From contig CAJFCJ010000025.1 in assembly GCA_904063045.1 (NCBI GenBank), positions 682,001 to 746,000 on the forward strand: a DNA stretch of 64,000 bases. Reading direction: 5' to 3'. The notes under the pieces are model-generated. The model had not been told where the DNA came from. It saw only the letters and a list, made by a program, of their open reading frames with translations, and searched no databases. Of this stretch, positions 53,011-58,325 are shown one piece after another; position 1 is the first letter of the stretch; each line of letters begins with the position of its first letter. Made by a program: the position numbers and the translations under genes. The stretch is from Dimorphilus gyrociliatus (lineage: Eukaryota; Animalia; Annelida).

Positions 53011-54211
53011 ATCTGATTGCTTTTTTTAAATGTAGCCTTTGATGTACTAGATTGGCTAACGCATTATTTTAAAATAGGTTTTGACCGTACAGACTTTTTA
53101 AAAAACTTAATCAATTGAACAATAAGTCTTATATTTTCCTAAGTTTCTTTCCCTAGGGTTAAATGAGAGGGGCTGTTCGTCTCCTCAACAAGTACTTGTC
53201 TGCTATAATAAATATACAGTTTATTTGAAAATTTTTATCAGTTTTAAGGAAATAATGAAGGTACGTGTTACTTTTATAAGTCAAAAAAAATATCAGTGTT
53301 TTTTACTAAGTTAACAATTAGCAGACAATAATCAAACCAAAAAAACATACTTAAGAATGTGAACTAATAACATAAGATGATAATGTTATGCTTTAATTTA
53401 TTTTTCGTCTTTACTTGTTAATTACTTCGAACTAGTATAATTCAACCCTTGTTATGTTTACTTTCCACGGAAATATCTGTTTAAGAATTTTGATAAAAAA
53501 AAGAACGAAAACCTTTTATTGGCCAATCTTGGATATCTCTTTTTGTACATAATGATCGGTGTATAGGTTTGTTTTTTTTCTGGGCTACAAACAAAATGTG
53601 CAATGCGAACGAAATTGTACAGTGTTTGGAAAACTGGAAAGCAATTATGTGTACAGCAAATTGTTTAAGTTCTTCCAATTTTGTTTTGAAAATACGAAAT
53701 GGTTTTTGTTTCTTTTTGTAGACAAACAATTTGTTATCTGTCATGCATGTATAAAAATGTTATTAAATACGATAGGCATTTTGTATATTTTTGTATGAAA
53801 ATTTTATTATTGTACTCTTTTTCATGGTGCACTCTCGAATAATTAATAAATTTACCAATTCTGTCTCAAAATGCCCGTCGCTGTCTTTACCAAAACAAAC
53901 AAACGAATAATATACAAAGTAGCGAACGTGTGTCTCCGTTATATGTACACATCTTTCATCGTCTTCAGTTTTAATTCATCCTGAAATAAAGTCATGCTAT
54001 CAGTTAAATCGTAATATGTTATTTGAAAATTTTAAAGACCACAAGGCATAGATCAAGGTCTGTTTCTAAATCTAACTCTTTGCTCTACATAGTATACGCA
54101 TAAGTGTATAAATAAATAAATATGCAGGCTTTGTATCATCGATGTATCGACAGAGTTAAACCTCAAACATTCATCTACAGCCATCTGGTGCTTGATTTTG
54201 AAAACTAATAC

Positions 54212-56771
54212 TCACTTTAAAAATGCCGGATGCATAAGTCCCGCTTGCGCTGCTGTTTGTTTACTTGTTGACGGCATCAGCAAAACCATTGCTCTATGTG
54301 TATGAGGAAATAGTTGTGTATAATTCGGCAGTGGGACATAAGCGGCGGTAACCATTCTTCCTCCAAACCAACGGCCGTGTAGAGCATTCACACTAGCAAC
54401 AGCGCTTGCTATTGAAGGACATTTCACGTAAACATTTCCTTGTGGACTAGCTTTATCAACATAGACGTGAACACATCCGCCATGCTTGTTACACTCAGTA
54501 ATGACATCATCTTTTATTTCTGTTTCCCAGTCTCCACTTTTATCAGAATTAGTATCAAACATGTTTGATAACATAAAACATTGTGTCGCTATCGGCGGGG
54601 TTGTGACAGCCTGCTGTAGGGCTTGTTGATGTTGTTCCTGCGGACGTAAAATACGCTGATGAATTAGAGCATTCCAGATTTCTAGAAACTTACTCTCATA
54701 TTCTGATTTACCTGAACACTAAGCGCTGAGGCAGCAGGCTTTGGTAATTGAAAACCTGTTCCCTCAGCTAGTTTGGCCATAAGCTGAAGTCTACCAGTTG
54801 CCCCTAAATCTATACCTGCCCTATCCATTTCATCTGTATCAATCATGCTACCAATACCATCCATTTTTTCAGTTACATGATTTACTTTCATAGGTCGCCC
54901 AGCAATTTCAAAGCCGTTCAGCTGCTCCATTGCCTTTTTAGCATCTTCACTTCTAATAAATGTAACGAAACCGAACCCTTTTGATCGACTTGTTTCTGGA
55001 TCCAATACTAGGTTTATGTGTTCAATCTAAATTGAAAAAAAAACAAAACAAATTTAGAAAAGGTTTTACATAATTTTTACATAGTCACTAATATTTTACT
55101 CGACGAAATACTAATTATCAACTTGTATCCAATTACCAATGGTATGGCTAATGCTCAATTAAAACAAATGAACTATGAAGTTTCTTCAATAGCTGATATA
55201 AAGATTTTGAATATGAAGATGTACGGAAGAGGATATAAACTAAGACACTTACTTTGCCAAAGGGTTCAAAAATTCCTCTTAGCATATCTTCTGTTATATT
55301 GAAATGCAAAGATCCAACATACAGTCTCATTGGGCCCTGTGACGCTCGTGCAGTTTCTGCCTCAATTTGTGCAGCTTGTTGAGCAGCTCTATTTTTCTCA
55401 GCTTGAGAGACTTGAACAATTATTGGAACACCAAGTAGCTTTTGACCATTCAAACCTAAGGCTAAATTCACAGAACTGGTTTCCTCAAATTCGACGTAAG
55501 CGATACCTTTTGATCTGTAAAAATGATTAATTGTGCTTTATTGTGCTTTTGTTTTAGAAAAATTTTATGATAAAGTATACCGTCCGGTCCTGCCATCAGC
55601 AATTAGGCGAACATCGTAAACTCTCCCAACAGAGCTGAAAAATTCTTCTAAGTCTCTTGGGCGAATTCTCTGAGAGAGTTGCATACAAAATACAGTTCTA
55701 GCATCACGTTCTTCTGGGGAATATTCATAATTTCTGGGTCTCTCACGAGGTGGCGATCTACGACGGGGTGACCTTCTCTTCTCTCGACTCCTTGAACGTC
55801 TTCGTCTGTCTCTATCCTTTTCTCGTTCTCTTTCTCTGCCTTTTTCTCGATGTCGGTCTTTACTTCTAGACCTTCTCTTACGATCTTTGCTTCGACTTCT
55901 GCTTTTTCTGTTTAATTAGAGAGAACTCTTTTAAAATAGAAAAAAAAAAAAACATTATGCAAACCTCTTAGTTCGGTCCCTGTCTCTTTCTCGTTCACGA
56001 TCTCTGTCCCTGTCGCGATCTCTGCTAGAAGCTCTATGCCCATTCGATTCCTGCATTTCGTATTAAACGGTTCACGTAGATCAGCAACACATGCCGAAAG
56101 TTTCGGGCGTGGCCGCCAAATTGAACAACACATTTTAGTAAAGATAGTAAACAAAGATTTGTTTACATATATAAAATAAATAATAAAGAAATCTATTAAA
56201 AAAGGCGCAAAATGGCGGCAGGCCCCGGATTGATCATTACCTCATCACGATCGTTTTACATTCATCCTCTTCTTGACTACTGTATAGATTAGTATTACCA
56301 TATAATTGCAATCTTTTTGTTTAATTATTTAAATACAAGTTTTTTCTTTTTATATTATATAAAATTTACGCACAAAATGTTGGTACCTTTCGCCTGCTGC
56401 CCACAATATGGTCTTTGTAAACGATCTGAGGGCGACAATATTCAGAGTAGACTCTTAGTTTGTCACACTATATTTTACATTAAAGATTATATATTAACAT
56501 TTTCTTAAAATACAAGCCATAAATCTGAAATTTTCTTCATGAACTTTGAATATACATAATTATAAGTAATGACTATACTTTAAAAATTAAAAGCATAGTC
56601 ATTAGAATAATGATTTAGATTTGTATAATAAAAATCCATGATACAGATTATATTCAAGCACATTTTGATATCAACGCCATTTCATTTTAACTTGCGGTTT
56701 TTGACTTAAATACTGACCTCTTTTTTGTAAGGAGCCTCAAGCATCGCTTCTACGTCGAAATCATCAGCCAT
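54212..56771 (-). CDS. RBM39: RNA-binding protein 39/CAPER (RS domain, two RRMs, UHM; about 495 aa)
   Basis: Exons 56771-56718, 56050-55965, 55907-55581, 55514-55253, 55026-54712 and 54655-54212 (1488 nt). MADDFDVEAMLEAPYKK, ERDARTVFCMQL, RSKGIAYVEF, RLYVGSLHFNITEDMLRGIFEPFG and a UHM with ATQCFMLSNMF...ALHGRWFGG. Confidence 0.96.
56241..56279 (-). other. Candidate 39-nt stop-containing (poison) cassette exon in RBM39 intron 1
   Basis: Minus strand reads TACTAATCTATACAG|TAGTCAAGAAGAGGATGAATGTAAAACGATCGTGATGAG|GTAATG: a branch-point-like TACTAAT, an AG acceptor, in-frame TAG, TGA and TAA, and a GAG/GTAATG donor. Confidence 0.5.
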
Positions 56772-58325
56772 TTTTTCCCTGTTAATCAAAAAATTTCAAG
56801 TTTCAAGAAAACAACTTTAGCTGTATAAAACAAGATGGCGGATGTCTGCTATAACGTAAAACGATAATCGATTTTAATCGATTACAATTATATCGCTTCA
56901 GATGTAGGAAATTCACCGTAATTAAAAGACATTCTGTGTATATTGACGAACAGATTACTATTTAAGTAGATTACCCCCAAAAAATTAGATAGCTATTGGG
57001 TGCTGCTTTGCAACCAATTGTTACTCGTTACTCTTTTTTGGATATAACTATGATTATTTATATTCCGAAGTTAAGATCATCGAAATAAACTAGCTTTATG
57101 CGGAAAAATGAACAAAATAGAAAACACGATTTTATCAATAGTTTTTTAAATAATATATAAAGTATTTTCTGACACTTGTTAATGTTTAGGTGAAGGGAAT
57201 TATAAAAATTGAACATTAATTGCGATTTGACAAAGATCACATGTTATCGATTAACTTCGGGAAGGCGTGAATTTTGAATCGATTATCATTTTCTCGTTCA
57301 TAATCCAGGGAAATCAATTTATCATGTCACATACTAGTCTAAGAGTACTTGCAAACGCAATACAATCTTACCTTTATTATATTTTTGAATTTCTCAATTA
57401 AAAATTACGACTAAAGGAATGTTGCAGCAGTCGGAGTCAGGATATCACCGTAAATCAAACGTCTGGCGAACAAAAATGGCTTCCGATCAGTTATTTTCGT
57501 AAATAAAAAGGAAATGTAATTTACATATTTAAGCAACATATCGAAATAAGATGTATTAAAACATAATAAATGAAAAAGAGAGGGAAAATGAGGATGGATA
57601 TTTTTTTATTAATTAATAGGAGTGATATTTGAAATAGACGAATCAACAACGTTCACTATTCAATGTAGATATTCAAGAACTGTGTTTTTTATTATCTATT
57701 TATAAAGTTATAAGCATTCATAGAAAGATCTGTTAAACTCGAAATGAAATAGTATTTTAACTATATTTTATTTTACAACATTTTTCATTTACATCAGTGA
57801 TAAATAGAGCAAATTATTCAATAAATGAAACAAAGAATAAAACAATTGACTTTACATAGTATGAGAAAAAAAATGTTTTCTGAACTTTGAACTGCTAACT
57901 GGCCAATTAATAGTTTATTCAAGTCGCTTAAGAAAAACAAGTAGTATTTTATATAAATAGTAAAAAAAATGAAAAGATTCAATTTGTAATAGAAAATTTT
58001 ACTGTTTTATCAGTAGAACACTCTTTTAGAACAGTTTGATAGAAAAAGAATCCCTGTATAATCTCTATAGAACTTCTTTTTATACAGTATATAATAAATA
58101 TATGCATGTATATATATATATACATATATTTAATTATTTCTATATACCTTCTTTTCTTTCACCATAATAACAATTGAAGAAAATTTATTTCGACTCAACA
58201 GACTAAAAGACGTACAAAAATGATTCACTAAAAAAAAGGCAAACTGTATAAAAAAAAGGAAAAAAAACGAACTAACTCTAAAATTAGTTCACAAATAAGT
58301 CTCATTCTCTTGTTAGTTAAGTATT

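Follow-up and report, generated by a model that had tools for sequence, protein, structure and literature searches.

A transcript-supported, ultraconserved two-exon poison cassette in the RBM39 gene of the annelid Dimorphilus gyrociliatus

Human RBM39 autoregulates through exon 2b, which sits between exons 2 and 3, and a large share of its transcripts is unproductive (PMC10477243). The published genome of the annelid Dimorphilus gyrociliatus comprises about 350 scaffolds and has a median intron length of 66 bp (10.1101/2020.05.07.078311). The RBM39 orthologue of this worm contains a 667-nt intron after its first coding exon, and a preliminary description of the sequence had placed a single 39-nt poison exon in it. 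We asked whether this exon is real, in which form it enters the RNA, and whether it is conserved. The window analysed was a 64,000-nt stretch of contig CAJFCJ010000025.1; all coordinates refer to it, and RBM39 with all features described below lies on its minus strand.

The exons of the gene matched RRM_1 and the RBM39 linker family in a domain search and were 100% identical to the deposited D. gyrociliatus proteins DgyrCDS13504, 13502, and 13509. Homology searches were run with single RBM39 exons, and the pieces were also aligned as separate rows to the full-length Lamellibrachia protein. RBM39 was found to be single copy in the D. gyrociliatus assembly (77.9 Mb, 349 contigs), and the UPF1 and UPF2 genes are both present in this species.

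We placed Logan contigs from four runs (X17, X1, X2, and X3) on positions 55560-57600, and every joint was GT..AG on the strand of the gene. X17 is the run from the window's own strain, and X3 comes from a slightly diverged relative. The results showed that the transcript begins with a 5'UTR exon, whose 3' part covers 57371-57600 and which extends about 100 nt past 57600 (X17 contig 11). The GT..AG joint 56777>57371, present in X17, X2, and X3, connects it to the first coding exon (56718-56777; ATG at 56771, 18 codons, phase 0 end) and skips a 593-nt 5'UTR intron (56778-57370), the 3' part of which is read through in some transcripts (X17 contig 10 is unbroken over 56751-57103). The 667-nt GT..AG intron (56051-56717) follows, and its canonical joint 56718>56050 was observed in X17, X2, and X3. 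It leads to coding exon 2 (55965-56050), which is covered by RNA contigs, opens the RS-rich region, and is 73% identical to L008, a genomic contig of a more distant relative. With the 593-nt 5'UTR intron upstream, the 667-nt intron is therefore the second intron of the transcript and not intron 1, as it had been called. The earlier account of intron sizes held for the three short introns, which measure 56-66 nt, and for one given as about 225 nt, which measures 226 nt, but it had overlooked further long introns of 593 and 235 nt.

The gene apparently has two 5' ends, namely the distal 5'UTR exon (57371-57700) spliced over 593 nt and an unspliced start at about 57103 that runs into the first coding exon. 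Three minus-strand copies of a GCCATNTT-type motif, which we take to be YY1-like, were noted at 57480-57473, 56839-56832, and 56216-56209, that is, near each apparent transcript start and in the conserved block described below, just past the donor of cassette exon 1b.

The 667-nt intron does contain the 39-nt unit at 56279-56241, together with the branch box, acceptor, and donor described for it. The RNA contigs demonstrated that this unit is a real exon, with the joint 56241>56050 present in X17 and X3 at the predicted donor. The joint expected on its upstream side, 56718>56279, was not seen in the RNA contigs of the four runs; 56718>56425 (X17 and X3) and 56387>56279 (X17) were used instead. 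Rather than the lone cassette that had been proposed, the exon is therefore the downstream member of a two-exon cassette in X17 and in L010, a transcript from a third lineage. We refer to the two exons, each of 39 nt, as 1a (56387-56425) and 1b (56241-56279). They are separated by a 107-nt intron (56280-56386), which was spliced in X17 and L010 and retained in X3 and X1 contigs. A 134-nt X17 contig spans exon 1, 1a, 1b, and exon 2 in full, the 1a-1b-exon 2 joints recur with identical junctions in L010, and X3 shows both outer joints of the cassette. A joint from 1a to exon 2 was found neither in the contigs of the runs nor in L010; in every case 1b or retained intron came after 1a.

X17 coverage of the intron was confined to the two cassette exons, and therefore the X17 signal represents RNA and not DNA. 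The junction contigs of X17 had a depth of 815 for the cassette and 512 for the canonical joint, with a sum close to the depth of exon 1 (1311); since contig depth is a poor measure of abundance, these values tell us no more than that the cassette is not a rare form. Intron-retaining contigs were present in X1, X3, and L010. Two deposited isoforms begin at an ATG within the final 6 nt of the 667-nt intron, so the annotators too saw transcripts retaining this region. These results show that the intron is removed either as a whole, which yields the productive mRNA, or in three pieces, which adds 1a and 1b.

Exon 1a has an open frame of 13 codons, and exon 1b, which is preceded by a TACTAAT box and a CAG acceptor and ends in a GAG/GTAATG donor, has TAG as its first codon (56279-56277); the reading frame therefore ends after 31 codons. 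Both stops foreseen in the preliminary description, the immediate TAG and a TGA after the tandem TAG acceptor, were recovered, the latter as the fifth codon. At least five exon junctions lie downstream of the premature stop in 1b. By sequence alone, exon-like units as such do not exceed chance expectation in this A+T-rich intron: loose rules gave five, against a shuffle mean of 2.4, and 21% of the shuffles reached five.

Conservation was assessed with two genomic contigs (L008 and L009) and the L010 transcript, which were reached via cluster members of the worm protein. We found that a block extending from the 1a acceptor region to the exon 2 acceptor (56051-56470) is identical to L008 at 411 of 420 positions (97.9%), whereas elsewhere in RBM39 the identity to L008 is 73-88% in coding exons and 35-63% in other introns. 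Exons 1a and 1b are each identical at 39/39 positions in both L008 and L010, with exon 2 diverged in L010, and the intron between 1a and 1b is identical to L008 at 104/107 positions. The branch box and all four splice sites of the cassette are unchanged. Fourfold-degenerate sites differ from L008 at 46% (Jukes-Cantor distance 0.71); about 190 changes would be expected in the block from this divergence, and about 12 were seen (binomial P about 1e-90). In X3, 16 positions differ in exon 3, 9 in exon 2, and 29 in 56398-56746, whereas the stretch 56053-56427 shows no more than two substitutions and an indel. The genome has a single copy of the block. Dinophilid lineages have thus kept the cassette, with about 340 nt of intron around it, nearly invariant, under very strong purifying selection. 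Taken with the RNA joints, these findings establish a real, transcript-supported, ultraconserved two-exon poison cassette in RBM39, with NMD as its predicted consequence.

The RNA structure of the region was also evaluated. Global structure of the 380-nt block did not exceed that of shuffles (z = -0.17), and at the 1b donor, where human exon 2b has an inhibitory stem-loop, a 6-bp hairpin over +4 to +9 of the intron was no better than chance (z = 0.1). The intron that separates 1b from exon 2 (190 nt) folded better than its shuffles (z = -2.27). Its clearest structural feature is an 8-bp hairpin (56166-56147; z = -4.33, with 0 of 200 shuffles folding as well), whose 4-nt loop (56158-56155) is the only part altered in X3 and in L008. 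The fold of this intron also predicted a long-range G+C-rich helix within 56104-56227, which would pair 56219-56213 with 56118-56112 and 56227-56224 with 56107-56104; both arms are identical in L008 and so provide no covariation. All seven L008 differences in the 190-nt intron fall at unpaired positions of the predicted fold. That these changes, about five independent events, appear to spare the predicted stems is suggestive only.

The human RRM2 motif N(G/U)NUUUG (PMC10477243), which sits immediately 5' to the acceptor of the human cassette, was absent at both cassette acceptors. Its only match in the intron (56158-56152) lies in the hairpin loop, far from the acceptors, and is lost in L008. 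The cis-logic of the cassette is probably not the human one. Other identities for the conserved intron were considered as well. An Rfam search of the intron returned no meaningful RNA family, and a C/D-box snoRNA (TGATGA in 1b, CTGA near exon 2) was rejected by eye because the terminal stem was absent and the spacing too long. A repeat or transposon was dismissed since the block is single copy, and an internal promoter since X17 gives zero coverage in the 1b-exon 2 intron.

We consider it likely that the cassette acts as an unproductive-splicing (AS-NMD) switch in the single D. gyrociliatus RBM39 gene. The stop-carrying isoform would be removed by NMD or would be otherwise untranslatable, and the choice of route would set RBM39 output. 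By analogy with human, this choice would most likely be governed by negative feedback from RBM39 itself, and it may be read out through weak cassette splice sites and the structured RNA between 1b and exon 2.

Judged by contig depth, the cassette isoform is apparently abundant at steady state, which one would not expect of an RNA that is degraded efficiently. The high depth of the cassette junction relative to the canonical one would fit a different reading, in which the cassette-containing and intron-retaining transcripts are stable functional products, namely nuclear detained RNA, non-coding RNA, or a template for an N-terminally truncated RBM39. The same reading would accommodate the retained intron in X1, X3, and L010 and the downstream starts chosen in the deposited isoforms and by the gene caller, and it has a parallel in the human TRA2-beta poison-exon transcript, which is reported to act as a lncRNA (PMC11829967). 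However, the downstream starts are choices of ORF callers and not observations, and both the truncated protein and the RNA localisation are hypothetical. We regard this reading as unlikely; it is also compatible with AS-NMD, and both could hold together.

It is decidedly unlikely that the block is conserved chiefly for a role at the DNA level, for instance as an intronic enhancer or a promoter-like site, with splicing incidental. Such an element would account for the CCGCCAT-type motif at 56216-56209, which is of the same kind as those near both apparent transcript starts (56839 and 57480), and ATAC-seq peaks in unusually long introns have been reported for this genome (10.1101/2020.05.07.078311). 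However, the block is bounded by the 1a acceptor region on one side and by the exon 2 acceptor on the other, the invariance includes the four splice sites and the branch box, and the same junctions occur in three lineages. In X17, where depth is 0 at 56112-56180, transcripts do not start inside the block, and the changes avoid the predicted stems. That exon 1a is a coding alternative exon adding 13 residues, with 1b an occasional error, is highly improbable: its 39 nt are in open frame, but the 1a to exon 2 joint such an exon would need was not seen, 1b or retained intron always comes next, 1b is just as invariant, and the nucleotide invariance of 1a resembles that of the surrounding intron and not that of the real coding exons. 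Exon 1a shows zero synonymous-type changes and is invariant at every codon position, and therefore the constraint is not on protein coding.

Among known systems, the closest to the proposed unproductive-splicing switch is human exon 2b, which some authors name exon 3. The worm cassette shares with exon 2b its gene family and apparently its place behind the first coding exon, and like exon 2b it carries a stop and combines this with extreme conservation of non-coding sequence. Unlike exon 2b, it consists of two exons spliced in together, its acceptors carry no RRM2 motif, and the block has no alignable sequence even in another annelid, Lamellibrachia. NMD and autoregulation have been shown for human exon 2b, whereas the worm cassette is known from sequence and RNA contigs. 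The ultraconserved poison exons of SR-protein genes and TRA2B also lie in splicing-factor genes and have a non-coding exon with flanks conserved above the coding level; they differ in gene and clade, and the worm conservation was measured within dinophilid annelids. The flanking introns of SR-protein and TRA2B poison exons are often retained, as here. The human RBM39 poison exon itself is conserved at 98.6% in Xenopus and 69.9% in zebrafish (PMC3176834, PMC6547761). In Drosophila, the RBM39 orthologue caper has annotated PTC-carrying exons, and its mRNA is bound by the Caper protein itself (PMC10332324); the worm gene is likewise an RBM39 orthologue of an invertebrate and likewise has splice forms with a stop.

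We investigated how far the cassette can be followed beyond dinophilids. The first coding exon of Lamellibrachia agrees fully with that of the worm in its peptide, its last codon, and its phase. The equivalent 1.6-kb Lamellibrachia intron (L007:3028-4672) showed no similarity to the block above shuffles; the exon sequence was thus recognisable in L008 and L010 and not in Lamellibrachia. The equivalent introns of three compact animal genomes (L005, L002, and L003) likewise gave no similarity to the block above shuffles. In these genomes the intron after the MADD...APYKK exon measures 1251 nt (L005:7330-8580), 646 nt (L002:8149-8794), and more than 1250 nt (L003:1-1254), compared with tens of bases elsewhere, and in the L005, L002, L003, and L007 genes it is the longest by far or among the longest. 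Long first introns are common generally, so a long intron in compact genomes argues only weakly for an element inherited from a common ancestor. The annelid intron lies after ...KKE in phase 0, and that of a fish RBM39-like gene lies after ...RK in phase 0, one codon away; the fish locus was rejected as a vertebrate comparison, being a paralogue with a 127-nt intron too small for a cassette.

It is possible, though doubtful, that the cassette shares an ancestral RBM39 poison exon with vertebrate exon 2b, the feedback loop descending from the bilaterian ancestor with its sequence replaced by lineage and the intron position kept. If true, shared ancestry would also explain why the intron has stayed long in several compact animal genomes.

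Further observations concern other RBM39 genes. Several exon-like units with stops were noted in the long L005 intron from its sequence. Two marine metatranscriptome contigs (L012:1-330 and L011:1-150) are RBM39 orthologues that both start in retained intron, and one of them has a roughly 56-nt stop-containing insert between an exon-2-like exon and the RS exons. The insert may mark an unproductive isoform in a further lineage.

A literature search did not find a paper mentioning poison exons in annelids. The locus provides a poison-exon cassette with transcript support in the RBM39 gene of a lophotrochozoan, and its conservation equals in degree that of the ultraconserved poison exons of vertebrates. 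It offers a small, tractable system for two questions: the role of the invariant intron sequence that flanks the cassette (about 340 nt), and whether RBM39 autoregulation is ancestral or re-invented.

Two other sites in the gene were noted. Alternative 56-nt introns offset by 18 nt (54711-54656 or 54693-54638; 54638-54717 overall) are both in frame, each swaps six residues, and both occur among the deposited isoforms. Near the 3' end, a second ultraconserved non-coding block (53830-53986), which begins the last exon, is single copy and identical to L008 at 156/157 positions. In L010 the 235-nt intron before the last exon (54215-53981) is removed by splicing, and the C-terminus becomes ...FLKMN in place of ...FLK, the end of the deposited worm RBM39 proteins.
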